Shown here in pieces: positions 12,038-34,200 of a DNA stretch of 64,000 bases (the first letter of the stretch is position 1; every line of letters starts with the position of its first letter). Source of the stretch: Macrostomum hystrix. Its lineage: Eukaryota > Animalia > Platyhelminthes. The notes beneath the pieces were generated by a model. The model saw only the letters and a list, made by a program, of their open reading frames with translations, was not told the DNA's origin and did no database searches. The DNA is taken from contig CATNEN010000038.1 of NCBI GenBank assembly GCA_950097015.1, forward strand, positions 4,340,001 to 4,404,000, written 5' to 3'. A program made the position numbers and the translations under genes.

Positions 12038-13163
12038 AACCTGTTAGACAGGCCTCTGTAACATGATAGTGAACCTGTTAGACAGGCCTCTGTAACATAA
12101 TAGTGAACCTGTTAGACAGGCCTCTGTAACATAATAGTGAACCTGTTAGACAGGCCTCTGTAACATGATAGTGAACCTGTTAGACAGGCCTCTGTAACAT
12201 GATAGTGAACCTGTTAGACAGGCCTCTGTAACATGATAGTGAACCTGTTAGACAGGCCACTGTAACATGATAGTGAACCTGTTAGACAGGCCTCTGTAAC
12301 ATGATAGTGAACCTGTTAGTCTCCGACTGTGTCCGGCAGCTCAATAACCTGGCCGGTAAGAATACCGTCAGACTTCAGTGGATACCAGGGCACGCCGGTT
12401 TCCCTGGTAACGAGCTTGCTGACCACCTGGCCAAGCAGGGAGGAGCCAGCTCTGCGCCGGGCCCCTCCCCCCCGGCTCCGATTCCGAGCACCGTCATTTA
12501 TTGTCAGATTAATGATTGGACCGCCAACCTCCATCTTACCCGGTGGAGAAGCACCACTAACTGCCGCCAATCCAAAGCGGCAGTTCCAGTGCCATCCGCT
12601 CGGCTCCGGAAGGTCCTTCTGAACCAGACCCGGAAGGACATCCGGGCCCTCACCATGACCCTCACGGGCCATGGCTGCTACGCCAGACACTGTTTCCTCC
12701 AGACACACTCCGGAGGTGGAGACCTCCGGAGTGAGCTGTGCCCTTTCTGCAACCTTGAGGACGAGGATGCCCTGCACTTCGTCTGCCACTGCCCTTTCTT
12801 CACCAGAGAGAGGCTCAATCACCTCGGACCAAACCCATCAATGGACGATGTTTGCAGATCCGAGAACATCCCGCGGCTCGTCCGGTTCCTAAGGGCTACC
12901 AGACGAGCCTCTTTCTTCCCCAGCGAGGAACAAGCTGCAGGAAGGACCGAACACGGACCTCCCTGACTGGCCCCGCGCCATCGGCCGATTGCGGGTCTTT
13001 CAGGGATTAGTGGAATGGGCGACTCCCGCCTCCCCGCTGCGTCCGTCGGACCGCCCTGCAGATAAGTCAAGTAAGTCAAGTTAGACAGGCCTCTGTAACA
13101 TGATAGTGAACCTGTTAGACAGGCCACAGTAGCATGATGGACAACCTGTTAGACAGGCCTCTA
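12038..13163. repeat. 34-bp minisatellite (AACCTGTTAGACAGGCCTCTGTAACATGATAGTG)n interrupted by a retrotransposon
   Basis: Array at 12038-12319 resumes in register at 13080. Confidence 0.9.
12320..13079 (+). mobile_element. 5'-truncated non-LTR retrotransposon (RNase H end + CCHC finger; I-group, R1/LOA-like)
   Basis: WIPGHAGFPGNELADHLAK RNase H motif, LTGHG, CPFC-x8-H-x4-C; stop at 12966; (TAAGTCAAG)2 tail; GTTAG duplicated at 12315-12319 and 13080-13084. Confidence 0.9.
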
Positions 13164-13363: not shown

Positions 13364-16300
13364 ATGACGTCATCAAGACTGTTCGCTTTGTGGCTCATCT
13401 GCTGGAACCCGACGTCGGCGATGCTGTTTGCCTCCGGTGTGAACCACACGGAGATGACGAAGAACATCACGGAGACGCTCAATCGTCTGCTGGACAACTA
13501 CGACAAGAACCTCCGGCCGGACTTTGACGCGGCTCCGGTCACCGTCCGGATCAACATGAATATTCGCAGCGTGGGCCCGATCTCCGAGAAGTCCATGATC
13601 TTCTCATTCGACTGCTACTTTCGCCAGGAGTGGGTCGACACCAGACTCACCTTCCCGACGCATCACAACTTCTCTCACCTGCAGCTCAACGAGAAGATGC
13701 TTCGCGACATCTGGAAGCCGGACACGTACTTTGTGAACGGCATGGGCTCCTACCTGCACAACATCACCTCTCCCAATGTACTTTTCCGCATCAACAGCAC
13801 CGGCCACATCCTGTACTCCATGCGACTCACCATCAAGGCCAACTGTCCCATGGACCTGCTGAAGTTTCCCATGGACACCCAGGTCTGTCCTCTGGTGGTC
13901 AGCAGCCACGGCTACACAGAAGCCGATGTTGTGTACGAGTGGGGCAAGGGCGACCGCTCCATCCAGCTGAACAAAGACCTGCTGCTGTCACAGTTCGACC
14001 TGCGCAGTGAGTGGCTGACTGTGTGTTGACTCTGTGCTGACTGTGTGCTGACTGTGTGCTGACTGTGTGTTGACTGTGTGTTGACTGTGTGCTGACTGTG
14101 TGCTGACTGTGTGCTGACTGTGTGCTGACTGTGTGCTGACTGTGTGCTGACTGTGTGCTGACTGTGTGCTGACTGTGTGCTGACTGTGTGCTGACTGTGT
14201 GCTGACTGTGTGTTGACTGTGTGCTGACTGTGTGCTGACTGTGTGCTGACTGTGTGCTGACTGTGTGCTGACTGTGCGCTGACTGTGTGCTGACTGTGTG
14301 CTGACTGTGTGCTGACTGTGTGCTGACTGTGTGCTGACTGTGTGTTGACTGTGTGTTGACTGTGTGCTGACTGTGTGCTGACTGTGCGCTGACTGTGCTG
14401 ACTGTGTGTTGACTGTGTGTTGACTGTGTGCTGACTGTGTGCTGACTGTGTGCTGACTGTGTGCTGACTGTGTGCTGACTGTGTGCTGACTGTGTGCTGA
14501 CTGTGTGCTGACCGTGTGCTGACTTGTGTGCCGACTGTGTGCTGACTGTGTGCTGACTGTGTGCTGACTGTGTGCTGACTGTGTGCTGACAGTGTGCTGA
14601 CTCTGTGCTGACTGTGTGTTGACTGTGTGCTGACTGTGTGCTGACTGTGTGCTGACTGTGTGCTGACTGTGTGTTGACTGTGCTGACTGTGTGCTGACTG
14701 TGCTGACTGACCTGCTGTGACAGTAGGTCACTCTTAGTTATGCCTGAATTGTGGATTTTTTACCACTGAGATTATTCAGATAATAAGAATGGTTTACATT
14801 TTCTATGAATCCTATCTTCTCAAAACACACATGTCCGCAGACATTCCGATTGGCCGTGCGCGAATGTCTATTGGAAATAGGGGCCAATTCTCTGTGCTGA
14901 AGTGCCACTTCGAGTTGCAGAGACATATGGGGTACTTTCTGCTTCAGGTAAACAGGCTGAGTTTGAAAACATGCTGTCTACATCCTACATGTTACATATT
15001 GTCTACATCCTACATGTTACATATTGTCTACATCCTATCTAACATGTTACATATTGTCTACATCCTATCTAACATGTTACATATTGTCTACATCCTATCT
15101 AACATGTTACATATTGTCTACATCCTGTCTAACATGTTACATCTTGTCTTCATCCTGTCTAACATGTTACATCTTGTCTTCATCCTGTCTAACATGTGAC
15201 ATTCTGTCTAACATGTGTCATTCTGTCTAACATGTGACATTCTGTCTAACATGTGTCATTCTGTCTAACATGTGACATTCTGTCTAACATGTGACATTCT
15301 GTCTAACATGCAACATTCTGTCTAACATGTGACATTCTGTCTAACATGCAACATTCTGTCTAACATGCAACATTCTGTCTAACATGTGACATTCTGTCTA
15401 ACATGCAACATTCTGTCTAACATGTGACATTATGTCTAACATGTGACATTCTGTCTAACATGTGACATTCTGTCTAACATGTGACATTCTGTCTAACATG
15501 TGACATTCTGTCTAACATGTGACATTCTGTCTAACATGCAACATTCTGTCTAACATGTGACATTCTGTCTAACATGTGAGATTCTGTCTAACATGCAACA
15601 TTCTGTCTAACATGCAACATTCTGTCTAACATGTGACATTCTGTCTAACATGTGACATTCTGTCTAACATGTGACACTTCTCGCTTAGGCAGTGCATAAT
15701 AATTTTCATCATAATAATATTAATTTTTTCCCCACACCAAAGCCACACTTGGCCACATAACTAGTGTGCTGAGGCCCTTTAAAATCAGTTATCTGAGAAA
15801 CAGGTTTTGGCTCTCAGAGCAGCTGCTGACCGGTATTTCCTGTGAGTTGCGCAGCTGTTTCACCAATTTCGCAGTCTTAATCGATTTTCTTCATCTTCGC
15901 CGTTTCCCCGGAGACCAGCTGTGGGATTTTCATCCTGCTAAGATAAGAGGTCACGACGTCACAGTAGCCAATGTTCTTTTAAAAGCAGCCTACAGTACTC
16001 AAAATTTCTAGTACTGTAGGCTGCTTTTACTACTCAAAGTCTCTAGATTTGTTCCTTGATTTCCTCGAAAGAAATTTGCACCAGGTCGGATATTTCTGTG
16101 ACAGGTTGAAATTCTGCCGAAAAAATGACTGAGAATTTGCTCCCTCCCCCCAGTTGAGTGCGGTATTCAACTCACTCAACTCAAATTTCTGAGCTATCCA
16201 GCCTCCCTGCCACTTCATCAGCTCAAGTAGCGGTGGTCAGTGGCGCGTCAAATTCGAGTACCCACTCAAATCTAATTTCACACTCTAAACCACTTCTATA

Positions 16301-18676
16301 AAGCTGCTAAATAAAACTATGAGATGAATAAAGTTATATTGAGGAGAACAGTCATTTCCTCAGGTAATGCCAGGTTCATGGTTGAGTCAGGAACTTCTTG
16401 CTGAAAGGTCATGGGTTCAAATCTGAGCTTAAAAGAAAGTGCTATTTCCTTTCTGTCTTATCTATTGGCTATATGCGGCATTTCGGGTGTGTCAGGGAAC
16501 TCTGGCCTCATGCGGAGGTTATTAAATCTCGCTGATCTCAGACAGCAGTGAGTCTGGGTGCGTAAGCCTCATCTAGTATGGTGTCAACTTCAACACGCCC
16601 GGAGACACTCAGAGAGTCAATGATTTTTTTCCTAGTTACCGATTTTCTGTCCAACTCACAAATGCAACTGTCGCCTGTGCGAGCTCTGCTGCGAACCCGA
16701 CAAGAAACAAGAAAGACTTGTTTCAAATGGGAAGACAAGTTCGATTCTATTGAATTTTCCTCAGTTTCAAAGACTTGTACGGGCCAAAATAAAGTTAAGA
16801 GTGATCAGCAACCTTCAACCCTTAACCTGCCTCATCGAATTCTCTCCTGAATCGTGTCTTACCTGCCCCGCCTAACCGTATCTGAATTCAGTGTCTCATC
16901 TCTGCTGTGTCTCATCTCTCCCGTGTCTCATCTCTCACGTGTCTCATCTCTCACGTGTCTCATCTCTCCCGTGTCTCATCTCTCACGTGTCTCATCTCTC
17001 CCGTGTCTCATCTCTCCCGTGTCTCATCTCTCCCGTGTCTCATCTCTCCCGTGTCTCATCTCTCCCGTGTCTCATCTCTCCCGGGTCTCATCTCTCCCGT
17101 GTCTCATCTCTCCTGTGTCTCATCTCTCCCGTGTCTCATCTCTCCCGTGTCTCATCTCTCCCGTGTCTCATCTCTCCCGTGTCTCATCTCTCCTGTGTCT
17201 CATCTCTCACGTGTCTCATCTCTCACGTGTCTCATCTCTCACGTGTCTCATCTCTCACGTGTCTCATCTCTCACGTGTCTCATCTTTCACGTGTCTCATC
17301 TCTCCCGTGTCTCATCTCTCACGTGTCTCATCTCTCACGTGTCTCATCTCTCCCGTGTCTCATCTCTCACGTGTCTCATCTCTCCCGTGTCTCATCTCTC
17401 CCGTGTCTCATCTCTCCCGTGTCTCATCTCTCCCGTGTCTCATCTCTCCCGTGTCTCATCTCTCCCGTGTCTCATCTCTCCCGTGTCTCATCTCTCCCGT
17501 GTCTCATCTCTCACGTGTCTCATCTCTCACGTGTCTCATCTCTCACGTGTCTCATCTCTCACGTGTCTCATCTCTCCCGTGTCTCATCTCTCACGTGTCT
17601 CATCTTTCCCGTGTCTCGTCTTTCCTGTGCCTCATCTCTCTTCCAGAGGAAGGGAAGCCCAGAGGAAAGACGAATTTGAATTATTTTAGGCGTCTTAAAT
17701 GTGCACTTGAGTTTAGCTAGATTATAGACAGACAAGGGAGTCCTGATTTGCAATTCACTTGCCCCCGCCTACCAAAGCAGCGGCAGCAGCAGCTGGCACT
17801 GATTTATTTGCATCTCAAAATTGGTGCCACAGAAGCAAATTATGCCAAACAAGCAGACAGCGAGAGAGAGTGAGAGCTCTAGTCAGTATTCGATAGATAA
17901 ATACATGCCTGTTGAGTCAGTGCAAGCTGAAGATGCTCCTGGGTCCTGATGCCATTCATTAATGACATCCAACTAAATTTGCTCATATTACTACTCAATA
18001 GCTCTGTGGGTAAAAAATATAATTTTTCTGGCCTTAGAAATGAGCTGCAGTCCATATTTTATTAACCATTTGCCAGCTGTACCTGCCCTGCAGCCTGCTG
18101 GTTGTGCTCAGCTGGGTCGGATTCTGGATCAACCGAGAAGCCACATCAGACCGCATTGCCCTTAGCATCACCACCGTGCTCACAATGACCTTCTTGGGCA
18201 TGGACAACCGCCAGGACCTGCCGCGGGTGAGCTACGGAACAGCTCTAGACTGGTACGTCGGCATGTGCTTCGCCCAGATCCTGGCCACCATCATTGAGTT
18301 CGCCTCAGTGCACTACTTCACCAAGCATGGCAGCGGCGAGACCCACGTCACCCTGGAGACAGACGGTGGCTCCGAGAACGGCAGCCTTCGCTACGGCCAG
18401 GCGAGGCCTCGGATGCAGCGGCCTTCGCTGCCGCCACCGCAGCTGACCGACGTCGCCGCCGCATCCGCAGCCGACAAGCTGGGAAAGGACAGCTGCCCGT
18501 ACGCCTTCCTGAACTGCATCAAGGGCAGCTCCAAGTACAAGGAGCTCAAGCTACTGCGCTCAACAAAGACCGTCAACTCCGTCAGCCGCATCGACGAGAT
18601 CTCCAAGGTGCTCTTCCCGGCGATGTTCGCTTTGTTCAACCTCGGCTACTGGACTGTGTACCTGAAGGTGCTCTGA
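13364..18676 (+). CDS. Cys-loop ligand-gated ion channel, GABA-A alpha/GRD-like, copy A. Exons 13364-14006, 14841-14947, 18077-18676
   Basis: Signal peptide, YDKNLRP, DCYFRQEW, IWKPDTYF, Cys loop CPMDLLKFPMDTQVC, M1-M4 with ATSDRIALSITTVLTMT; phase-consistent GT-AG introns. Confidence 0.93.
14014..14710. repeat. 11-bp minisatellite (CTGACTGTGTG)n, intron 1 of copy A
   Basis: Tandem array; inverted counterpart at 22390-22968. Confidence 0.95.
14975..15676. repeat. Compound minisatellite: 30-bp unit grading into 19-bp (ATTCTGTCTAACATGTGAC)n
   Basis: Adjacent arrays share TCTAACATG. Confidence 0.9.
16891..17640. repeat. 16-bp satellite (GTGTCTCATCTCTCCC)n
   Basis: Reverse complement of the 27760-33540 satellite unit. 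Confidence 0.95.
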
Positions 18677-19135
18677 CTGTATACCTGACTGTGTACCTGA
18701 CTGTGTACCTGACTGTGTGCCTGACTGTGTACCTGAATATTGATAAATGATAATTTCGCAGCTGAGTTTCAAGCTGATGACTTAACAAAGTTTTCTGTTA
18801 GACTTCTAAGTTGCTGAGTAGATTTGTAACAAATCATACGATCTGTAGTCTTAGCTGGGCTGCCTGATATAATATTCAATACATTTGCAGTAAGTGAGAG
18901 AACAGTTAGCAGACCTTTATTCTTCTTTGAACAGTCTTTCGCTGATAAATTTTCTTAAACCTTTTTTCAAGCTCAGAATTTTAATGGTAAAATAATGAAG
19001 CAAGCGAACTGTGTAAAAAGGAAATTTTTATTTCAATAATTTAGTGGGATTAACACGACACATTGTTTGAAAACATCCTACACAAAGTATTGTAATCAAA
19101 CAACTATTGATACCAACAGCACAGTCAGAGCAACT

Positions 19136-19810
19136 TCAGGTACACAGTCAGGCACACAGTCAGGTACACAGTCAGGTACACAGTCAGCTACACAGTCAGG
19201 TACACAGTCAGGTACACAGTCAGGTACACAGTCAGGCACACAGTCAGGCACACAGTCAGGTACACATTCAGGTACACAGTCAGGCACACAGTCAGGTACA
19301 CATTCAGGTACACAGTCAGGCACACAGTCAGGCACACAGTCAGGTACACATTCAAGTACACAGTCAGGTACACATTCAGGTACACAGTCAGGTACACAGT
19401 CAGGTACACAGTCAGGTACACAGTCAGGTACACATTCAGGTACACAGTCAGGCACACAGTCAGGCACACAGTCAGGTACACATTCAGGTACACAGTCAGG
19501 CACACAGTCAGATACACAGTCAGGTACACAGTCAGGCACACAGTCAGGTACACAGTCAGGTACACAGTCAGGTACACAGTCAGGTACACAGTCAGGTACA
19601 CAGTCAGGCACACAGTCAGGTACACATTCAGGTACACAGTCAGGTACACATTCAGGTACACAGTCAGGCACACAGTCAGATACACAGTCAGGTACACAGT
19701 CAGGTACACAGTCAGGTACACAGTCAGGTACACAGTCAGGTACACAGTCAGGTACACAGTCAGGCACACAGTCAGGTACACAGTCAGGTACACAGTCAGG
19801 TATACAGTCA
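19136..19810. repeat. 12-bp minisatellite (TCAGGTACACAG)n abutting the stop codon of copy B; ~5-unit inverted copy at 18674-18735
   Basis: Tandem array, ~56 units. Confidence 0.95.
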
Positions 19811-22800
19811 GAGCACCTTCAGGTACACAGTCCAGTAGCCGAGGTTGAACAAAGCGAACATCGCCGGGAAGAGCACCTTGGAGATCTCGTCGATGCGGCT
19901 GACGGAGTTGACGGTCTTTGTTGAGCGCAGTAGCTTGAGCTCCTTGTACTTGGAGCTGCCCTTGATGCAGTTCAGGAAGGCGTACGGGCAGCTGTCCTTT
20001 CCCAGCTTGTCGGCTGCGGATGCGGCGGCGACGTCGGTCAGCTGCGGTGGCGTCAGCGAAGGCCGCTGCATCCGAGGCCTCGCCTGGCCGTAGCGAAGGC
20101 TGCCGTTCTCGGAGCCACCGTCTGTCTCCAGGGTGACGTGGGTCTCGCCGCTGCCATGCTTGGTGAAGTAGTGCACTGAGGCGAACTCAATGATGGTGGC
20201 CAGGATCTGGGCGAAGCACATGCCGACGTACCAGTCTAGAGCTGTTCCGTAGCTCACCCGCGGCAGGTCCTGGCGGTTGTCCATGCCCAAGAAGGTCATT
20301 GTGAGCACGGTGGTGATGCTAAGGGCAATGCGGTCTGATGTGGCTTCTCGGTTGATCCAGAATCCGACCCAGCTGAGCACAACCAGCAGGCTGCAGGGCA
20401 GGTACAGCTGAAAAGGTAGCGAAATGGCTAGTAAGTCCGAGTGTTAACGCTGGAAATATTTCAGAGGCTCATACTACTATAAGTAGAGCGCAACGCGCCA
20501 TCGATTTTCAACTATCAGTTTCTAGGTAAATTTCGGTGACCACTGAAGTCGGAGATGATGCAGGCACATTCGGGTGACATACTAATAGAGTTTGAAGGCC
20601 TGTCAAGGCCGCACTGAGGCGCAGTGCAAATTCGTATATAGGGTTGCACTGCGCCTAAATATAGGGTTGCACAACAAAAAGTTAGCCCGTGTTCTTGAGT
20701 TTCGTGTGATTGCAGAAATAATTGTCAGGGAGGAGTCGCTGTGGTTTCCTGTTCTACTTGTGATTCGGCTAATATAGATGCAACCCATTACTTTAATTGA
20801 CTTGATCATCCGAGTTCTTATTTTCCAAGACACGACCATCTGCTTCTCATTTCGCATGGATTTTGAGGATTTGCAAGGCATTAAGTTAGCCAGTCCATTT
20901 TCAATTCCGAAATCTGCATTTCTCGTCTTCAACCGGGTTCTCTGAAGATTTCATTCTGTCACTGGGTCTGCGCGAACCGCATTTTTCATAGTCCTGATTG
21001 CATGAGTGCTAAGGCATGGTCTTAAAATGTTCCCTGTCTAAGATTTATCTGCGAAACTCGAGTTTTAGAATCTGATCATCTTAATGGACCCTCAAATTAT
21101 TTTTGCAGAACTGAACAAGCTTATTTTTCTTGTCTTTACCATCATGAAGGCAACCAGATAAGCTTTCGTGAACATAGTCATACTGATTCTGGTATCATAT
21201 TTATGTACTTTAATTAATCACTCCTGTGTAGTCTAAAGCATTTCCTCTTTGTGTTCATACTGATCTCTTCTGTGTACTCAAACTGATCCCTTCTGTGTAC
21301 TCAAACTGATCCCTTCTGTGTACTCAAACTGATCCCTTCTGTGTACTCAAACTGATCCCTTGTGTGTACTCAAACTGATCCCTTCTGTGTACTCAAACTG
21401 ATCCCTTCTGTGTACTCAAACTGATACCTTCTGTGTACTCAAACTGATCCCTTCTGTGTACTCAAACTGATACCTTCTGTGTACTCAAACTGATCCCTTC
21501 TGTGTACTCAAACTGATCCCTTCTGTGTACTCAAACTGATCCCTTCTGTGTACTCAAACTGATCCCTTCTGTGTACTCAAACTGATCCCTTCTGTGTACT
21601 CAAACTGATCCCTTCTGTGTACTCAAACTGATCCCTTCTGTGTACTCAAACTGATACCTTCTGTGTACTCAAACTGATCCCTTCTGTGTACTCAAACTGA
21701 TCCCTTCTGTGTACTCAAACTGATCCCTTCTGTGTACTCAAACTGATCCCTTCTGTGTACTCAAACTTAACCCTTCTGTGTACTCAAACTGATCCCTTCT
21801 GTCTACTCAAACTGATTCCTTCTGTGTACTCAAACTGATACCTTCTGTGTACTCAAACTGATCCCTTCTGTGTACTCAAACTGATCCCTTCTGTGTACTC
21901 AAACTGATCCCTTCTGTGTACTCAAACTGATCCCTTCTGTGTACTCAAACTGATCCCTTCTGTGTACTCAAACTGATCCCTTCTGTGTACTCAAACTGAT
22001 CCCTTCTGTCTACTCAAACTGATTCCTTCTGTGTACTCAAACTGATCCCTTCTGTGTACTCAAACTGATCCCTTCTGTGTACTCAAACTGATCCCTTCTG
22101 TGTACTCAAACTGATACCTTCTGTGTACTCAAACTGATCCCTTCACTGTGAAACATCGAAAACACCTGGGACGCACCTGCAGCAGAAAGTATCCCATGTG
22201 TCTTTCAAACTCGAAGTGGCACATCAGCGCCGAGAATTGGCCCCGCCTTCCCATGCGCAAAGTGTCACGACTGATGGGAATTCCTGCACGGTAAGCCAAG
22301 AGTTGGGAAATTACGTGGGATTTGTAATGCATCTCATTGGTAGTTAATGCATTCAGGGCACAGCCGAGAGTGACAACTGTCACAGCAGGTCAGTCAGCAC
22401 TGTCAGCACACAGTCGGCACACAAGTCAGCACACGGTCAGCACACTGTCAGCACACAGTCAGCACACAGTCAGCACACAGTCAGCACACAGTCAGCACAC
22501 AGTCAGCACACTGTCAGCACACAGTCAGCACACAGTCAGCACACTGTCAGCACACAGTCAGCACACAGTCAGCACACAGTCAGCACACAGTCAGCACACA
22601 GTCAGCACACAGTCAGCACACAGTCAGCACACAGTCAGCACACAGTCAGCACACAGTCAGCACACAGTCAGCACACAGTCAGCACACAGTCAGCACACTG
22701 TCAGCACACAGTCAGCACACAGTCAGCACACAGTCAGCACACAGTCAGCACACAGTCAGCACACAGTCAGCACACAGTCAGCACACAGTCAGCACACAGT

Positions 22801-23643
22801 CAGCACACAGTCAGCACACAGTCAGCACACAGTCAGCACACAGTCAGCACACAGTCAGCACACAGTCAGCACACAGTCAGCACACAGTCAACACACAGTC
22901 AACACACAGTCAACACACAGTCAGCACACAGTCAGCACACAGTCAGCACAGAGTCAACACACAGTCAGCCACTCACTGCGCAGGTCGAACTGTGACAGCA
23001 GCAGGTCTTTGTTCAGCTGGATGGAGCGGTCGCCCTTGCCCCATTCGTATACAACATCGGCTTCCGTGTAGCCGTGGCTGCTGACCACCAGAGGACAGAC
23101 CTGGGTGTCCATGGGAAACTTCAGCAGGTCCATGGGACAGTTGGCCTTGATGGTGAGTCGCATGGAGTACAGGATGTGGCCGGTGCTGTTGATGCGGAAA
23201 AGTACATTGGGAGAGGTGATGTTGTGCAGGTAGGAGCCCATGCCGTTCACAAAGTACGTGTCCGGCTTCCAGATGTCGCGAAGCATCTTCTCGTTGAGCT
23301 GCAGGTGAGAGAAGTTGTGATGCGTCGGGAAGGTGAGTCTGGTGTCGACCCACTCCTGGCGAAAGTAGCAGTCGAATGAGAAGATCATGGACTTCTCGGA
23401 GATCGGGCCCACGCTGCGAATATTCATGTTGATCCGGACGGTGACCGGAGCCGCGTCAAAGTCCGGCCGGAGGTTCTTGTCGTAGTTGTCCAGCAGACGA
23501 TTGAGCGTCTCCGTGATGTTCTTCGTCATCTCCGTGTGGTTCACATTGGAGGCAAACAGCATCGCCGACGTCGGGGTCCAGCAGGTGAGCTGATGAGTCC
23601 ATGCCGCGAGCCACAGGAAGACAGCAGTTGAGCTCGATGCCAT
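19808..23643 (-). CDS. Cys-loop ligand-gated ion channel, GABA-A alpha/GRD-like, copy B (inverted paralog). Exons 23643-22977, 22283-22177, 20407-19808
   Basis: Same motifs, exon-2/3 sizes and intron phases as copy A; different signal peptide and exon 2. Confidence 0.93.
20535..20730. mobile_element. Fragment of an unclassified interspersed repeat, homologous to 62875-63140
   Basis: Shared GGAGATGATGCAGGCAC..GAAGGCCTG.CAAGGCCGCACTGAGGCGCAGTGCAAATTCG and CAACAAAAAGTT.GCCCGTGTTCTTGAGTTTCGTGTG. Confidence 0.7.
21258..22144. repeat. 23-bp minisatellite (CTGATCCCTTCTGTGTACTCAAA)n, intron 2 of copy B
   Basis: Tandem array, ~38 copies. Confidence 0.95.
22390..22968. repeat. 11-bp minisatellite (CAGTCAGCACA)n, intron 1 of copy B
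   Basis: Reverse complement of 14014-14710. Confidence 0.95.
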
Positions 23644-25284: not shown

Positions 25285-28200
25285 ATGTCAAATATTTTAA
25301 ACCTAGTAAATCACAGGACAGTTGCTTTAGCCAGCCTTGGCGCTTGTGCATCTATTGCTGCCGCCTACATATATTCGCGCGCGTCATGGTCTCTTAGTAA
25401 AATTGAAGGTAAGTTAGCAGTTTGCTTTTTTGCTTTTTTTCATAAAAATTGTCATAGTACGAAATAATTATTTTACATTAATGTCTATGGTCTGTTTGCT
25501 TGAAAACAATAAAACTAAATGCTATTCATAGAAACTAAGAACTACCTCTACATGTACACAGTTAAAAAGAAACCATTTTCAACTACAATAATTTCACTTA
25601 TTATTTTTTTAAAGCTACAATTAAACATAAATATACATGCCATAAATACTTTTTGTGGTTTCTCATATATAGAAATCTCTACAAGCTTAGTATAAAATAT
25701 GAAACGATAATAATCATATTGTTATATTATTCCTATCTGATGAGTTGAAATGGTTTTCTCTTGGTTTTGCTGGGTTTTTTTTAATATGCTGAAGATAGTT
25801 TAAATTATTTACGAGTATGATAAGAAACTTTAGATTTGTGTGGAATTGTAAGCAAAAATTGATTTAAAATGAGAGTAATGGTGTTATTTGGAATGGCTCA
25901 TAAAAAGTAAAAAATATATGAAAGTAAATTTCTCAAAATATGGTGAATTTTTTATAAGCTTTTATCTATGACACAATATTTTGAATGTTCATTTGAATTT
26001 TATCCAAGTTCTAACAAATTACATGTGAATGAATGTATTCTAAAATAATGTTCAGGTTGCATTGTCTGTCTTGCAAAAATCAAATAAGAAAACATATTTA
26101 TGCAATTTGGATAATTGTTAAAATTCATAATTTACTTGGTTGTTAAAGTATATTAGCTTCTGCAAAACTATGGCTTTGTACCAGGCTAGTAGCTATATAT
26201 ACCAAAAAGTCATACATTTGTATTGCATATTATTTATTGTCGAACTAGTACTTTTAACCTTTGATTCTAAATATAATTCTAGTCATATATTGGCGCGGCG
26301 AAAACTCAGGTTTATTTGTCATTTGGGGGATTATTTGCCTCATACTCACCGTTTTCTATCCCCGAGATTTAGATATCGCTTTGAGGATTAATTATGTGAT
26401 TTCCCATCAGCCTTGGCAGATGCTTTTGTTCCTCATTTCCTCTCGTGTTTCGAAAATTCACCTTGGCTATATGAGCCAAACCCTATCCCGCCTTCATTGG
26501 TCAAGGCGCATTTGATTTGCTTTGACGCGCAAATCCTCTCGATAATGCTGTGGCCCTCGTAACACTCAGGAAATGAGCTGGGCATAGATACGCTTTTGTG
26601 AATTAGCTCAAACAGGATACTAAGGATGAGACTAAATGCCGTACATTCACGCGCTTTGAAGCTATAGTGGGATCCATCAATAGATATGCCTAAGCTTCTA
26701 GATCAGGGGTCGGCAACCTTATATACCCCGCGGGCTAAAGAGAGAATCTTAAAGACGACGGCGGGCCGCATGAAGAAAGGGGAGAGATCAGACAGGTGAG
26801 AGATGAGTGAGACAAGTGAGAGATAAGACGGGGGAGATAAGACGCAAGAGAGATGAGACGGGGGGAGATAAGACGCAAGAGAGATGAGACGGGGGAGATA
26901 AGACGCAAGAGAGATGAGACAGGGGAGAGATGAAAAAGGGGAGAGATGAGACAGGGGAGAGATGAGACTGGGGAGAGATAAGACGCAAGAGAGATGAGAC
27001 GGGGGAGATAAGACGCAAGAGAGATGAGACGGGGGGAGATAAGACGCAAGAGAGATGAGACGGGGGAGATAAGACGCAAGAGAGATGAGACAGGGGAGAG
27101 ATGAAAAAGGGGAGAGATGAGACAGGGAGAGATGAGACTGGGGAGAGATAAGACTGGGGAGAGATGGGATAGGGTGTACTGTAGAGTAGGTGTTAGGAGG
27201 AGCTAAGGGCCAGATTTGGGAGCTTTGAGGGCCGCATCTGGCCCGTGGGCCGGAGGTTGCCGACCCCTGTTCTAGATAGTTGGTAATGAAATTCCTTCAT
27301 TATCCATAGATTATTCTCATATTTTATCAAGTATTATACTTTTTATCTACTGAAGCAAGTCGGAATGAGTAGTATGAATTGTTTTTATATTTTTTACTAA
27401 ATGATAGACGACTTTAATATTGATTTCTTCTTTCTACATATGATGTTAACTAAAGAAAACACATGCAAGTAATTCTATAAGTTCGCAACACAAGAAAAAA
27501 TCTAATAAATTAAACAAACAATTTGTTAGAATTTGAGCTAACAAACCGTGAAAAAATGAGAGAAAATCACGTTTTCAGTACGTGTTTTTGCGCAGACAGT
27601 TCCTGACCTATGGCAGTGTAAAAACAAATTAGCATTCTTTGATAATTATGAGTCTCTACTTCCTGGCAACTGTTTTAACCCAGGTGTCGGCCACGCTACG
27701 TACCTCACAGGCCAAATGGAGAATAAATGACTATAAAGAGAATAGAGAACTAACTGTGTAGAGATAAGACAGGGGGAGAGATGAGGTACTGGAGAGATGA
27801 GACACGGGAGAGATGAGGTACTGGAGAGATGAGACACGTGAAAGATGAGACACGTGAGAGATGAGACACGTGACAGATGAGACACGTGAGAGATGAGACA
27901 CGGGAGAGATGAGACACGGGAGAGATGAGACACGGGAGAGATGAGACACGTGAGAGATGAGACACGGGAGAGATGAGACACGGGAGAGATGAGACACGTG
28001 AGAGATGAGACACGGGAGAGATGAGACACGGGAGAGATGAGACGCGGGAGAGATGAGACACGTGAGAGATGAGACACGTGAGAGATGAGACACGTGAGAG
28101 ATGAGACACGGGAGAGATGAGACACGGGAGAGATGAGACACGGGAGAGATGAGACACGGGAGAGATGAGACACGTGAGAGATGAGACACAGGAGAGATGA

Positions 28201-31200
28201 GACACAGGAGAGATGAGACACGGGAGAGATGAGACACGGGAGAGATGAGACACGGGAGAGATGAGACACGTGAGAGATGAGACACGGGAGAGATGAGACA
28301 CGGGAGAGATGAGACACAGGAGAGATGAGACACGGGAGAGATGAGACACAGGAGAGATGAGACACAGGAGAGATAAGACACGTGAGAGATGAGACACAGG
28401 AGAGATGAGACACGGGAGAGATGAGGCACGGGAGAGATGAGACACGGGAGAGATGAGACACAGGAGAGATGAGACACGGGAGAGATGAGACACGGGAGAG
28501 ATGAGACACAGGAGAGATGAGACACGGGAGAGATGAGACACAGGAGAGATGAGACACGTGAGAGATGAGACACAGGAGAGATGAGACACGGGAGAGATGA
28601 GACACAGGAGAGATGAGACACAGGAGAGATGAGACACGTGAGAGATGAGACACAGGAGAGATGAGACACGGGAGAGATGAGACACGGGAGAGATGAGACA
28701 CGGGAGAGATGAGACACGTGAGAGATGAGACACGGGAGAGATGAGACACGGGAGAGATGAGACACAGGAGAGATGAGACACGGGAGAGATGAGACACAGG
28801 AGAGATGAGACACAGGAGAGATGAGACACAGGAGAGATGAGACACGGGAGAGATGAGACACAGGAGAGATGAGACACGGGAGAGATGAGACACGTGAGAG
28901 ATGAGACACAGGAGAGATGAGACACGGGAGAGATGAGACACGGGAGAGATGAGACACGGGAGAGATGAGACACGGGAGAGATGAGACACGGGAGAGATGA
29001 GACACGGGAGAGATGAGACACGGGAGAGATGAGACACGGGAGAGATGAGACACGGGAGAGATGAGACACGGGAGAGATGAGACACAGGAGAGATGAGACA
29101 CAGGAGAGATGAGACACAGGAGAGATGAGACACGGGAGAGATGAGACACGTGAGAGATGAGACACAGGAGAGATGAGACACAGGAGAGATGAGACACAGG
29201 AGAGATGAGACACGGGAGAGATGAGACACGTGAGAGATGAGACACAGGAGAGATGAGACACAGGAGAGATGAGACACGTGAGAGTTGAGACACAGGAGAG
29301 ATGAGACACGGGAGAGATGAGACACGGGAGAGATGAGACACGGGAGAGATGAGACACGTGAGAGATGAGACACGTGAGAGATGAGACACGTGACAGATGA
29401 GACACGGGAGAGATGAGACACGGGAGAGATGAGACACAGGAGAGATGAGACACGGGAGAGATGAGACACGGGAGAGATGAGACACAGGAGAGATGAGACA
29501 CGGGAGAGATGAGACACGGGAGAGATGAGACACGGGAGAGATGAGACACGGGAGAGATGAGACACAGGAGAGATGAGACACGGGAGAGATGAGACACGGG
29601 AGAGATGAGACACGGGAGAGATGAGACACGGGAGAGATGAGACACAGGAGAGATGAGACACGTGAGAGATGAGACACAGGAGACATGAGACACGGGAGAG
29701 ATGAGACGCGGGAGAGATGAGACACAGGAGAGATGAGACACGGGAGAGATGAGACACGGGAGAGATGAGACACAGGAGAGATGAGACACGGGAGAGATGA
29801 GACACGGGAGAGATGAGACTGGGAGAGATGATACACGGGAGAGATGAGACACGTGAGAGATGAGACACGGGAGAGATGAGGTACTGGAGAGATAAGACAC
29901 GGGAGAGATGAGACACGTGACAGATGAGACACGTGAGAGATGAGACACGGGAGAGATGAGACACGGGAGAGATGAGACACGGGAGAGATGAGACACGTGA
30001 GAGATGAGACACGGGAGAGATGAGACACGGGAGAGATGAGACACGTGAGAGATGAGACACGTGAGAGATGAGACACGTGAGAGATGAGACACGGGAGAGA
30101 TGAGACACGGGAGAGATGAGACACAGGAGAGATGAGACACGTGAGAGATGAGACACAGGAGAGATGAGACACGGGAGAGATGAGACACAGGAGAGATGAG
30201 ACACAGGAGAGATGAGACACGTGAGAGATGAGACACAGGAGAGATGAGACACGGGAGAGATGAGACACGGGAGAGATGAGACACAGGAGAGATGAGACAC
30301 GGGAGAGATGAGACACGGGAAAGATGAGACACGGGAGAGATGAGACACGGGAGAGATGAGACACAGGAGAGATGAGACACGGGAGAGATGAGACACGGGA
30401 GAGATGAGACACGGGAGAGATGAGACACGGGAGAGATGAGACACAGGAGAGATGAGACACAGGAGAGATGAGACACGGGAGAGATGAGACACGTGAGAGA
30501 TGAGACACAGGAGAGATGAGACACAGGAGAGATGAGACACGGGAGAGATGAGACACGGGAGAGATGAGACACGGGAGAGATGAGACACGGGAGAGATGAG
30601 ACACAGGAGAGATGAGACACGGGAGAGATGAGACACAGGAGAGATGAGACACGGGAGAGATGAGACACGGGAGAGATGAGACACGGGAGAGATGAGACAC
30701 GGGAGAGATGAGACACAGGAGAGATGAGACACGGGAGAGATGAGACACGGGAGAGATGAGACACAGGAGAGATGAGACGCGGGAGAGATGAGACACAGGA
30801 GAGATGAGACACGGGAGAGATGAGACACGGGAGAGATGAGACACAGGAGAGATGAGACACGGGAGAGATGAGACACGGGAGAGATGAGACTGGGAGAGAT
30901 GAGACACGTGACAGATGAGACACGTGAGAGATGAGACACGGGAGAGATGAGACACGGGAGAGATGAGACACGGGAGAGATGAGACACGGGAGAGATGAGA
31001 CACGGGAGAGATGAGACACGGGAGAGATGAGACACGTGAGAGATGAGACACGGGAGAGATGAGACACGGGAGAGATGAGACGCGGGAGAGATGAGACACG
31101 TGAGAGATGAGACACGTGAGAGATGAGACACGTGAGAGATGAGACACGGGAGAGATGAGACACGGGAGAGATGAGACACGGGAGAGATGAGACACGGGAG

Positions 31201-34200
31201 AGATGAGACACGGGAGAGATGAGACACGTGAGAGATGAGACACGTGAGAGATGAGACACGGGAGAGATGAGACACGGGAGAGATGAGACACGGGAGAGAT
31301 GAGACACAGGAGAGATGAGACACAGGAGAGATGAGACACGGGAGAGATGAGACACGTGAGAGATGAGACACGGGAGAGATGAGACACGGGAGAGATGAGA
31401 CACAGGAGAGATGAGACACGGGAGAGATGAGACACGGGAGAGATGAGACACAGGAGAGATGAGACACGGGAGAGATGAGACACGGGAGAGATGAGACTGG
31501 GAGAGATGATACACGGGAGAGATATAACACGTGAGAGATGAGACACGGGAGAGATGAGGTACTGGAGAGATAAGACACGGGAGAGATGAGACACGTGACA
31601 GATGAGACACGTGAGAGATGAGACACGGGAGAGATGAGACACGGGAGAGATGAGACACGGGAGAGATGAGACACGTGAGAGATGAGACACGGGAGAGATG
31701 AGACACGGGAGAGATGAGACACAGGAGAGATGAGACACGGGAGAGTTGAGACACGGGAGAGATGAGACTGGGAGAGATGATACACGGGAGAGATATAACA
31801 CGTGAGAGATGAGACACGGGAGAGATGAGGTACTGGAGAGATAAGACACGGGAGAGATGAGACACGTGACAGATGAGACACGTGAGAGATGAGACACGGG
31901 AGAGATGAGACACGGGAGAGATGAGACACGGGAGAGATGAGACACGTGAGAGATGAGACACGGGAGAGATGAGACACGGGAGAGATGAGACACGTGAGAG
32001 ATGAGACACGTGAGAGATGAGACACGTGAGAGATGAGACACGGGAGAGATGAGACACGGGAGAGATGAGACACGTGAGAGATGAGACACGTGAGAGATGA
32101 GACACGTGAGAGATGAGACACGGGAGAGATGAGACACGGGAGAGATGAGACACGGGAGAGATGAGACACGGGAGAGATGAGACACGTGAGAGATGAGACA
32201 CGGGAGAGATGAGACACGGGAGAGATGAGACACGGGAGAGATGAGACACGTGAGAGATGAGACACGTGAGAGATGAGACACGTGAGAGATGAGACACGTG
32301 AGAGATGAGACACGGGAGAGATGAGACACGGGAGAGATGAGACACGTGAGAGATGAGACACGGGAGAGATGAGACACAGGAGAGATGAGACACGTGAGAG
32401 ATGAGACACAGGAGAGATGAGACACGGGAGAGATGAGACACGGGAGAGATGAGACACGTGAGAGATGAGACACGTGAGAGATGAGACACGGGAGAGATGA
32501 GACACGGGAGAGATGAGACACGGGAGAGATGAGACACGGGAGAGATGAGACACGTGAGAGATGAGACACAGGAGAGATGAGACACGGGAGAGATGAGACA
32601 CGGGAGAGATGAGACACGGGAGAGATGAGACACGGGAGAGATGAGACACGGGAGAGATGAGACACGGGAGAGATGAGACACGTGAGAGATGAGACACAGG
32701 AGAGATGAGACACGGGAGAGATGAGACACAGGAGAGATGAGACACGGGAGAGATGAGACACGGGAGAGATGAGACACGTGAGAGATGAGACACGGGAGAG
32801 ATGAGACACGGGAGAGATGAGACACGGGAGAGATGAGACACGTGAGAGATGAGACACGTGAGAGATGAGACACGTGAGAGATGAGACACGTGAGAGATGA
32901 GACACGGGAGAGATGAGACACGGGAGAGATGAGACACGTGAGAGATGAGACACGGGAGAGATGAGACACAGGAGAGATGAGACACGTGAGAGATGAGACA
33001 CAGGAGAGATGAGACACGGGAGAGATGAGACACGGGAGAGATGAGACACGTGAGAGATGAGACACGTGAGAGATGAGACACGGGAGAGATGAGACACGGG
33101 AGAGATGAGACACGGGAGAGATGAGACACGGGAGAGATGAGACACGTGAGAGATGAGACACAGGAGAGATGAGACACGGGAGAGATGAGACACGGGAGAG
33201 ATGAGACACGGGAGAGATGAGACACGGGAGAGATGAGACACGGGAGAGATGAGACACGGGAGAGATGAGACACGTGAGAGATGAGACACAGGAGAGATGA
33301 GACACGGGAGAGATGAGACACAGGAGAGATGAGACACGGGAGAGATGAGACACAGGAGAGATGAGACACGTGAGAGATGAGACACAGGAGAGATGAGACA
33401 CGGGAGAGATGAGACACGGGAGAGATGAGACACAGGAGAGATGAGACACGGGAGAGATGAGACACGGGAGAGATGAGACACGTGAGAGATGAGACACAGG
33501 AGAGATGAGACACGGGAGAGATGTGACTGGGAGAGATAGTATGTGTTAGAGCAAGTGTTGGATGTTTCGAGGGCGTACCAGCCCTCGGGGCCGGAAGTTG
33601 CCGACCCCTTGTTTAATATTTTTGATTTTTTAAATATATTTTAACTACTTAAAGTAGTGTCTTAAAAAGTTGTAGAATTTTAAATATATATAAGAATAGC
33701 ATAGAGAATGAAATTTAAGTAGGCCTAAAAAGGAATGAAAAGTGTTAGGCTCAGGTCAATTTCAACTTCTGCCTTTATCTAGTATTTCTGACTAAACGCT
33801 CAGTGATGAACAAGTTGAAAAATCCTGAAAGGCAGGTGACAGTCAAGCATGGCCGTCGCAATTGTCTCGACCCCTGGTGTAGTAGACCCAGTAAACTGCT
33901 TGAAACGCTGCGTACACGATTGGGAAGATAAACCGACTCCAGTAGTCCAGACTGCGCGATTGACTAAGTCTGCAGCGCCTGTGGACTCGCGGTCGGCTGG
34001 TGCTCACGGCTTGTCTGGTCTCCTCTTGGTTGTTGTCATTAGTTACCTCCGGATTCGGGACTTCGACAGCAGTAGTAGCTTTGTCTGAGTGGATGTGAGA
34101 GCAAAGTATAAAATATGATAGGGATCTGAGATTGGTGAATAACCGACTGCTCAAATCTAGGGATCTGAGATTGGTGAATGACCGACTGCTCAAATCTGGG

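Follow-up and report, generated by a model that had tools for sequence, protein, structure and literature searches.

In a 64,000-nucleotide stretch of Macrostomum hystrix DNA (the window) we found two genes for predicted Cys-loop receptor subunits, A and B, that lie as an inverted pair, are nearly identical over exons 1 and 3, and are strongly diverged in the short exon 2 between them. The process that it appears to illustrate, mosaic concerted evolution, is already well known, and the pair adds a clean case. We consider it likely that mosaic conversion of an old inverted pair, with exon 2 escaping mainly as a short island, explains the locus overall. We infer conversion as the mechanism, and likewise the functional difference, if there is one, between the A and B subunits.

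A tail-to-tail pair of predicted GRD-type subunit genes

A and B are convergent three-exon genes arranged tail to tail, A on the plus strand (13364-18676) and B on the minus strand (23643-19808). The exon coordinates and every GT/AG splice site of both genes were recovered as a preliminary description of this DNA had given them (Table 1). The two genes end in near-identical inverted exons about 1 kb apart. When the window was searched by tblastn with both exon 2 peptides, no further exon-2-like copy was found, so that each gene has one exon 2. This rules out a hidden alternative exon 2 inside the introns. Nor is the arrangement one of mutually exclusive alternative exons, in which at least two copies would lie within one gene.

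Table 1. Features of the A/B gene pair, in window coordinates.
Feature	Position	Strand	Description	Evidence
Gene A exon 1	13364..14006	+	signal peptide and most of the ligand-binding domain; phase 1 end at GTGAGT donor	ORF, splice site
Identity block 1, arm A	13393..14750		exon 1 from codon 11 and intron-1 11-bp minisatellite; pairs with 23590-22350	
Intron-1 11-bp minisatellite, gene A	14014-14702		unit GCTGACTGTGT	TRF
Gene A exon 2 (2A)	14841..14947	+	107 nt; beta9-loop C-beta10-preM1	AG/GT boundaries, RNA-like contigs
Gene A intron 2	14948..18076	+	30-, 19- and 16-bp minisatellites; no alignment to B intron 2	
Gene A exon 3	18077..18676	+	M1-M3, intracellular loop, M4, stop; 'ATSDR' before M2 in place of PAR	
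Identity block 3, arm A	18074..18736		pairs with 20410-19748; 663 nt, 1 mismatch; begins at exon 3 acceptor CAG	
Palindrome central spacer	18737..19747		~230 nt unique, then 12-bp minisatellite 19136-19832, ~58 copies, the 3' flank of B	
Gene B exon 3	19808..20407	-	single difference from A exon 3, at the partner of 18431 (Thr vs Pro)	
Gene B intron 2	20408..22176	-	23-bp minisatellite 21255-22144	
Gene B exon 2 (2B)	22177..22283	-	107 nt	
Gene B intron 1	22284..22976	-	11-bp minisatellite 22398-22969	
Gene B exon 1	22977..23643	-	own start codon and signal-peptide start; 7 nt differ from A, from 23590 inward	

Domain and homology searches were run exon by exon on the modelled genes. PF02931, the ligand-binding domain of neurotransmitter-gated channels, was found on exon 1 of A and B (E = 7e-47), and PF02932 on exon 3 (E = 1e-34; M1-M3, intracellular loop and M4 region). 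The exon 1 translations of both genes contain the Cys-loop, two cysteines 13 residues apart (CPMDLLKFPMDTQVC), and the closest solved structures to exon 1 are GABA-A alpha chains. M4 aligns with GRD-type proteins, and matches outside Macrostomum carry the names GABA receptor alpha-like or GRD. Ahead of M2, A and B read REATSDR compared with REATADR in Nasonia and Apis GRD; the PAR motif is absent, as it is from GRD (PMC2064938). We classify A and B by this homology as predicted GRD-type ("GABA receptor alpha-like", non-PAR) Cys-loop subunits. GRD-type subunits are characterized by GABA gating, cation selectivity and formation of heteromers with an LCCH3-like partner.

In solved GABA-A alpha chains the segment aligned with exon 2 is 'SSTGEY...KIGYFVIQ'. 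This supports the earlier assignment of exon 2 to beta9-loop C-beta10, with preM1 included. In GABA-A alpha subunits loop C caps the alpha(+) interface and not the beta(+)/alpha(-) GABA site. By analogy, loop C of A and B, which would belong to an alpha-like subunit, need not cap an agonist site; since the subunit is alpha-like and of predicted GRD type, such capping is only putative.

Near-identical blocks and a diverged exon 2

Over exon 1 from 13393 the two copies differ at 7 of 614 nt. Four differences at the signal-peptide end of the exon (13398, 13407 and 13436/7) are non-synonymous, and the three in the mature part (13918, 13933 and 13939) are all synonymous; our recount thus found the same three synonymous changes that had been claimed past the signal peptide. 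Exon 3 was confirmed to differ at one base in 600 (18431, C/A, Pro/Thr). Between 2A and 2B, 28 of 107 nt and 12 of 36 residues differ, and both these counts and the peptides quoted with them were reproduced exactly. The difference rate in exon 2 departs strongly from that in exons 1 and 3 (Fisher p = 4e-26). Synonymous divergence (dS) between A and B is 0.02 in exon 1, about 0.86 in exon 2 and 0 in exon 3. For comparison, exon 1 of A has a dS of 0.83, comparable to the exon 2 value, against a third paralogue, C, present on contig C7 of the same genome.

Over only 35 codons, exon 2 has a dN/dS of about 0.23; the loop part taken alone gives 0.41 and beta10 gives 0.06. With the dS of 0.86, these values rule out that a recent duplication was followed by rapid positive selection on exon 2. 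The mature A and B subunits are distinguished by 12 residues in beta9-loop C-beta10 and by a single one in the intracellular loop, which bears out the earlier statement that they differ almost only in the loop-C segment. GC3 is 0.60 in 2A and 0.69 in 2B compared with 0.81-0.85 in exons 1 and 3. This contrast is no evidence of biased conversion, because the unconverted paralogue C is also GC3-rich.

We found that identity between the copies extends beyond the exons. It takes in about 700 nt of the intron-1 11-bp minisatellite, whose aligned portions, measured per 100 nt, are 94-99% identical; in the same 100-nt steps the identity of block 1 declines after about 14750. Block 1 was recovered as a 1005-nt inverted repeat at 99%, and by BLAST at 97.5% over 1203 nt; in block 3, identity continues for 60 nt 3' of the stop codon. 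Between the blocks lies an unalignable segment of 1.9-3.4 kb. Alignment of A to B was no better than that of shuffled sequence in the 5' flanks, in the final 100 nt of intron 1 and at either end of intron 2. This leaves intron 2, the 5' flanks and the ~90 nt of intron 1 next to exon 2 unalignable. The earlier observation that signal peptides and non-repeat intron sequence cannot be aligned therefore holds against shuffled sequence.

Since the intronic minisatellite is homogenised too, the identity of the two copies does not come from selection on the protein; purifying selection at the protein level alone is ruled out for exons 1 and 3, as synonymous sites and intron are identical as well. Conversion through an RNA or cDNA intermediate is also ruled out, because the intron-1 minisatellite is homogenised while exon 2 is not.

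Comparison with Macrostomum lignano

Between-species tests were made at the protein level, with the M. lignano pair taken from one protein model, P0151. This model contains a 2B-type exon (2B') identical to M. hystrix 2B at 34 of 35 residues, and it ends in antisense sequence from a partner exon 3 (tblastn E = 4e-45). The partner exon 3 is compatible with the exon 3 of its own species at 147 of 147 codons, compared with 137 of 145 for M. hystrix. Exon 1 is identical at all 187 residues within M. hystrix and at 180-181 of 187 against M. lignano. Exons 1 and 3 are thus alike within species and different between species, which at the level of protein sequence is the pattern of concerted evolution. 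Exon 2 appears to behave in the opposite way: in a comparison of the two M. hystrix exons with the M. lignano protein model, 2B groups with 2B' (34/35) rather than with 2A (24/35). When the 2B' stretch of P0151 was used for a region search, only P0151 itself was returned, with no 2A-type or further 2B-type protein in the database in that length range. No 2A-type exon was seen outside the M. hystrix genome; M. lignano models mostly skip exon 2.

In a second M. lignano model, P0001, the B-type copy is fused to the upstream neighbour gene that it also has in M. hystrix, so that synteny is conserved. Because P0151 combines a 2B-type exon with antisense sequence from a partner exon 3, the inverted pair is probably older than the split between M. 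hystrix and M. lignano. This inverted partner and the exon 2 dS, which is like the distance to paralogue C, agree with the old duplication proposed in the preliminary description.

A different history would be a recent inverted duplication, after which introgression or a diverged third paralogue supplied one copy with a new exon 2 and intron 2. Near-identical outer and inner blocks would then need no long-term conversion, and a third paralogue does exist. However, exon 2 of paralogue C matches 2A and 2B at 21 and 20 of 35 residues, no closer than 2A is to 2B, and a genome-wide search of the 220-Mb assembly found no other DNA copy of 2A or 2B. The signal peptides and 5' flanks are likewise unalignable, M. 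lignano has a 2B exon with an inverted partner, and the species-specific states of exons 1 and 3 are common to both copies of each species. We regard such a replacement as highly improbable.

Transcripts and assembly

Runs were taken as RNA-like when their contigs hold the exon alone. Spliced exon 1-2A-3 contigs, joined as modelled, were found in three RNA-like runs (X2, X3 and X4) of two studies. They match 14841-14947 exactly and then run into the end of exon 1 and the start of exon 3. Two RNA-like contigs end 30 and 27 nt out. A bubble against 2B mRNA would end them at exactly these points, and the ends imply that 2B mRNA is also present. The earlier proposal that both versions of exon 2 are spliced thus stands directly for 2A and, through contig ends, by implication for 2B. 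A and B, each with its own 5' flank, both appear to be transcribed, the expression of B being deduced from the same contig ends.

The assembly was made with canu from PacBio reads, followed by haplotig purging and polishing with Arrow and Pilon. With such a procedure, and with minisatellites surrounding every block, an inverted pair might have been assembled out of two haplotypes or a chimeric palindromic read, or polishing might have homogenised exons 1 and 3. Against this, the middles of the arms are wholly different, so no hairpin-read palindrome is involved, and the assembly comes from the inbred line SR1 (F ~0.998; PMC10468722), so that A and B are not alleles. In a read check that covered one repeat-free stretch, exon 2A, RNA-like contigs branch exactly at A/B difference sites, joining 2A to common exon 1 and exon 3 sequence. 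DNA run X1 has 2A and 2B at equal depth (79 and 72.7). Eight A/B differences outlasted polishing, and M. lignano, an independent assembly, has the same pattern. An artefact of this kind is therefore extremely unlikely. The identity of A and B may be slightly overstated, since short-read Pilon polishing can wipe a few real differences between near-identical copies.

Probable gene conversion and the proposed escape of exon 2

Our preferred reading is that the locus arose as an old tail-to-tail inverted duplication of a gene for a GRD-type pentameric channel subunit. Recurrent gene conversion between the arms, at the DNA level, would keep block 1 (~1.3 kb) and block 3 (663 bp) nearly identical. 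Homology would have been lost between the blocks, and there the 107-nt exon 2 would evolve independently, together with the ~90 nt of intron 1 before it and the whole of intron 2. Exon 2 most likely escapes as a short island between unalignable introns, too short for efficient conversion, and purifying selection would then keep each of its versions. The homogenised synonymous sites and intronic minisatellite, together with an identity that is higher within than between species, sustain the earlier proposal of gene conversion between the arms. The minimal efficient processing segment for conversion is about 200 bp, and conversion falls sharply at about 80% identity (PMC3924818). Since 107 nt is less than this segment, passive escape of exon 2 is possible.

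The same mosaic conversion could be combined with selection that removes events erasing a functional difference in loop C, the 'peak of divergence' of Teshima and Innan and the adaptive version put forward in the preliminary description. Several observations are in keeping with this. 2B is unchanged at 34 of 35 residues across species compared with changes at 8 of 35 positions in paralogue C exon 2 over the M. hystrix-M. lignano span. Both 2A and 2B are intact at a dN/dS of 0.23, with mRNA observed directly for 2A and implied for 2B, and exon 2 lies only ~90 nt from the edge of the actively converting block 1. In a beetle, GRD also diversifies loop C, by splice variants (PMC2064938). However, we did not find a narrow peak with homogenised flanks at exon 2; the intron stretches on both sides are unalignable, and conversion is therefore mechanically blocked there whatever selection does. 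Nor was there an excess of non-synonymous change: over only 35 codons, even the loop part has a dN/dS of just 0.41, and beta10 has one of 0.06. As the flanking introns have diverged too and dN/dS is 0.23 overall, selection acting to diversify loop C is a candidate only. We hold it to be possible, if somewhat doubtful. The earlier claim that loop C escapes conversion thus stands for the divergence of exon 2 and not for a selective cause.

A further suggestion gives the convergent palindrome a function of its own. Read-through could cause transcriptional interference or produce a 600-bp double-stranded RNA, so that each cell settles on one copy. Read-through transcription is hinted at by P0151, which passes out of one exon 3 and into antisense sequence from the other. 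If this suggestion were true, the locus would do between two genes what mutually exclusive splicing does within one, and conversion would let the two copies share the same pore and assembly surfaces. We consider such a device very unlikely.

Discussion

If mosaic conversion with passive escape of exon 2 is the right reading, A and B are an inverted pair that shows mosaic concerted evolution in compact form and with clear boundaries, and that has probably been kept across the split of two Macrostomum species. The pair is also a natural loop-C swap. Because the mature subunits differ only in the loop-C segment and one intracellular-loop residue, whatever preference for agonists, modulators or partners set them apart could be assigned to that segment without chimeras. 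For annotation, the locus is a reminder that gene models skip short exons in minisatellite-rich introns, as three of four M. lignano models did, and that palindromic pairs can end up fused in one model, as in M. lignano.

The primate red and green opsins (Teshima & Innan 2008; reviewed in PMC3924837) resemble A and B in being old duplicates kept near-identical by conversion with one short specificity exon, opsin exon 5, different. In both systems paralogues resemble each other more closely than orthologues do in the converted parts, with the reverse in the escaped exon. However, the opsins are in tandem and their flanking introns are homogenised, which shows selection, whereas A and B are inverted with unalignable flanking introns, so that passive escape is possible.

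Insect RDL exons 6a/6b and the Tribolium GRD loop-C variants (PMC2064938) belong to the same superfamily, and GRD to the same subunit family, and they too place alternative loop-C-region segments on one scaffold. In the insect genes the alternatives lie within one gene and are picked by splicing. In contrast, A and B have one exon 2 per gene and separate 5' flanks, and their scaffold would be kept by conversion.

The arms of the ampliconic palindromes of the human Y chromosome are kept almost identical by intrachromosomal conversion. They share with A and B the inverted arms, the short spacer and, on our preferred reading, long-term arm-to-arm conversion. Whereas the Y-chromosome arms are homogenised over their full length, in A and B only blocks of about 1.3 and 0.66 kb are alike, with 1.9-3.4 kb of unalignable sequence between them.

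The gene pair and its receptor type

The inverted pair at 13364-23643 consists of two convergent (tail-to-tail) Cys-loop receptor genes, A and B, with three coding exons apiece, and all introns are GT/AG with consistent phases. The coding sequences are 1350 nt (A) and 1374 nt (B). Sequence searches were run on each exon separately. In exon 1 the domain hit is to the neurotransmitter-gated channel ligand-binding domain (PF02931, E = 7e-47), in exon 3 to the transmembrane region (PF02932, E = 1e-34). GABA-A alpha subunits are the top relatives among solved structures, and named relatives from outside the flatworms go under "GABA receptor alpha-like" or GRD. The motif that precedes M2, ATSDR, resembles the ATADR of insect GRD and is unlike the PAR of anion channels. 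GRD is without PAR and, together with LCCH3, makes cation channels (PMC2064938).

We found that exon 2 aligns to GABA-A alpha "SSTGEY...HLKRKIGYFVIQ", which comprises loop C, beta10 and pre-M1. This agrees with the preliminary description, which had gone on to state that the segment caps the agonist site. GABA-A subunits of alpha type place loop C on the alpha(+) face, the benzodiazepine-type interface; the GABA site is beta(+)/alpha(-). Thus capping of an agonist site by the loop C of A or B hinges on the stoichiometry of GRD-type subunits.

Positions of features on the stretch, or on the contig named
Feature	Position	Strand	Remark
Gene A, exon 1	13364-14006	+	
Gene A, exon 2 (2A)	14841-14947	+	
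Gene A, exon 3	18077-18676	+	
Gene B, exon 1	23643-22977	-	
Gene B, exon 2 (2B)	22283-22177	-	
Gene B, exon 3	20407-19808	-	
Spacer minisatellite, 12 bp	19136-19832		unit CTGACTGTGTAC (coding strand)
RNase H ORF	12301-12966	+	221 aa
PAR-type gene	33873-44038	-	upstream of B
PAR-type gene, exons	~44038-43649, 37483-37358, 35944-35636, 33950-33873	-	
Skewed stretch	28000-34000		GC skew +0.5, AT skew +0.65
Skewed stretch	37000-42000		GC skew ~-0.6, AT skew ~-0.5
Paralogue C (loci L031-L033)	contig C7, ~2340158-2348860	-	
Close Cys-loop pairs	C41:3253096/3259589, C11:5414190/5432606, C39:12550640/12554966, C7:3447488/3459819	same strand	

Coding divergence is concentrated in one exon

From 13393 onward exon 1 differs between A and B at 7 of 614 nt, with four non-synonymous differences at the end of the signal peptide and three synonymous ones clustered at 13918-13939. 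Exon 3 differs at a single base in 600 (18431, Pro/Thr). Exon 2 differs at 28 of 107 nt and 12 of 36 residues, and the heterogeneity between exon 2 and exons 1 and 3 is strong (Fisher p = 4e-26). We thereby reproduced the earlier counts of three synonymous changes in exon 1, one base in exon 3, and 28 nt and 12 of 36 residues in exon 2. The non-repeat intron sequence had been called non-alignable, and the stretches tested do score like shuffled sequence: no alignment above that level was obtained for the 5' flanks, the last 100 nt of intron 1 or either end of intron 2.

Two findings extend the preliminary description. The block of identity that begins in exon 1 takes in ~700 nt of the 11-bp minisatellite of intron 1; the aligned parts of this array are 94-99% identical, and the identity fades near 14750. 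The second block begins no more than 3 nt from the exon 3 acceptor and runs 60 nt beyond the stop, reaching into the 12-bp minisatellite that occupies most of the 1-kb spacer. The spacer unit echoes the final codons of exon 3 (...ACTGTGTACCTGA..., 18640-18740), and the array looks as if it had grown from the gene's own 3' end. The intron-1 unit, GCTGACTGTGT, closely resembles it.

The assembly derives from the inbred line SR1 (F ~0.998) and was made with canu, Arrow and Pilon (Wiberg et al. 2023, PMC10468722). Run X1, which behaves as DNA, covers 2A at a depth of 79 and 2B at 72.7; since both are equally deep in an inbred line, they are two loci and not alleles. Polishing may have erased a few true differences between the arms. 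It cannot bring a divergence of 26% down to 0-1%, and eight differences in exons 1 and 3 survived it.

A probably old duplication

dS between A and B is 0.02 in exon 1, 0 in exon 3 (M1-M3 part, 85 codons) and ~0.86 in exon 2 (dN/dS 0.23), the last over only 35 codons and with a wide error. The dS of exon 2 is on a par with the 0.83 found between exon 1 of A and that of the nearest other paralogue, C. Identity of paralogue C is 82% for mature exon 1 sequence (77% across the 204 aa compared), and its exon 2 is also 107 nt; its exon 3 equivalent is interrupted by an additional intron ahead of the M4 part, and it is without an inverted partner.

A recent duplication with a replaced middle was also considered. 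No further copy of 2A or 2B was found in the 220-Mb assembly and no additional exon-2-like sequence in the window, and exon 2 of C is no nearer to 2A or 2B than these are to each other. That reading is therefore left without a donor and is very unlikely. GC3 is 0.60 in exon 2A and 0.69 in exon 2B (14843-14947 and 22177-22281; 35 codons only), 0.81-0.85 in exons 1 and 3, and 0.83 in exon 2 of C.

Relatives in Macrostomum lignano

The nearest database proteins to A and B come from M. lignano, with four UniProt models orthologous to A or B (P0001, P0002, P0151, P0152), three of which lack the 107-nt loop-C exon. P0151 carries IPISRDTLRMGRRGSFSALMCHFEFERHMGYFLLQ, identical to 2B at 34 of 35 residues. 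Past "...GYWTLYLKV" the model runs on for another 148 residues, and these align with exon 3 of this window read in antisense (E = 4e-45). Because this tail matches exon 3 antisense, the one gene model suggests that the M. lignano locus also has an inverted partner exon 3 just downstream. P0001 is a B-type copy fused to the orthologue of the PAR-type gene upstream of B, thus synteny is conserved. The skipped exon, the fusion and the antisense read-through are the kind of annotation error to which short exons and palindromic pairs are prone.

Read codon by codon, the antisense tail shows that at 147 of 147 aligned codons the M. lignano partner is compatible with that species' own exon 3, against 137 of 145, with additional gaps, for M. 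hystrix exon 3. Between A and B the mature part of exon 1 is identical at 187/187 aa, between two M. lignano models at 186/187, and between the species (A/B type) at 180-181/187. For exon 2 the values are 24/35 between A and B, 34/35 between 2B and its M. lignano counterpart, and 27/35 for paralogue C between species. At the protein level the converted exons appear to cluster by species and the escaped exon by paralogue, as would be the signature of concerted evolution. A search with the exon-2 segment of P0151 found no 2A orthologue among database proteins of that length range.

Probable conversion and the escape of exon 2

These patterns are best read as the result of recurrent gene conversion between the inverted arms. 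Such conversion would act on DNA, because intron and synonymous sites are homogenised and exon 2 is not; a cDNA route is excluded by the unhomogenised exon 2. The preliminary description had proposed an old duplication with conversion between the arms, and the high exon 2 dS against 0-0.02 elsewhere, the homogenised intron and the M. lignano grouping support this.

Conversion requires ~200 bp of well-matched sequence and drops steeply around 80% identity (PMC3924818). Exons 1 (643 nt) and 3 (600 nt), kept similar by purifying selection, would remain convertible, while the introns would have diverged through minisatellite turnover. Exon 2 is a 107-nt island amid unalignable sequence and would escape passively. 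Given this short island, its unalignable flanks and the homology requirement, passive escape is a sufficient explanation, and it accounts for a second block that begins exactly at the exon border. It is possible that selection instead removes loop-C conversions, as at opsin exon 5 (PMC3924837), and the strong conservation of 2B between M. hystrix and M. lignano is consistent with this. However, we tested for a narrow divergence peak with homogenised flanks and for an excess of non-synonymous change in exon 2, and both were absent. The earlier view that loop C escapes homogenisation holds for exon 2.

Expression of 2A and probable expression of 2B

The stretch 14700-15000 was compared with contigs of X2, X3 and X4, runs from two studies whose contigs behave as RNA. 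These span precisely exon 2A, with 30 nt from the end of exon 1 on one side and 27-30 nt from the start of exon 3 on the other. At 1361 nt, the length of the X3 contig agrees with 619 nt from exon 1, then exon 2A, then 635 nt from exon 3 plus its 3' flank. The RNA-like contigs are direct evidence that a 1-2A-3 mRNA exists.

The X2 contig consists of 30+107+27 nt, and the X4 contig likewise has 27 nt after exon 2A. These ends are each exactly 30 nt away from the first or the last base that differs between 2A and 2B, the final CAG being common to both. A k=31 graph breaks at such points when a 1-2B-3 mRNA is present in the same sample. An exon-skipped mRNA predicts 30 nt behind exon 2A, where 27 are seen. 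From these end positions we infer that 2B is expressed; splicing of both versions had been expected, and for 2A the contigs display it directly. X2 is labelled as another organism than X1 ("organism B", same study), yet its exon 2A contig is at least 99% identical to the window, so that either the label, the sample or a species boundary is at issue.

Neighbouring and other Cys-loop genes

The gene upstream of B also encodes a Cys-loop receptor, more distantly related and carrying a PAR motif ("ATPARVTIAF"). Its introns overlap two strongly skewed stretches, which are probably long, oppositely oriented satellite arrays. The ORF ~400 nt upstream of the gene A start covers the C-terminal portion of an RNase H domain (PF00075, E = 2e-08) and is probably a retrotransposon remnant. 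Elsewhere in the M. hystrix genome, close same-strand Cys-loop pairs have open frames of 330-900 aa and apparently few introns; the family seems to have grown by tandem duplication.

Comparison with known systems

The A/B mosaic brings no new mechanism. Palindromes are well known for conversion between their arms. Mosaic conversion from which a specificity segment escapes is well known too, as in the opsins and RHD/RHCE (PMC3924837). A full-text literature search, which was not exhaustive, returned no report of conversion-maintained Cys-loop receptor pairs. The A/B pair is a tidy natural loop-C swap, worth mentioning in work on Macrostomum or on channel evolution. In Tribolium GRD, which belongs to the same subunit family, loop-C variation is instead made by splicing (PMC2064938).
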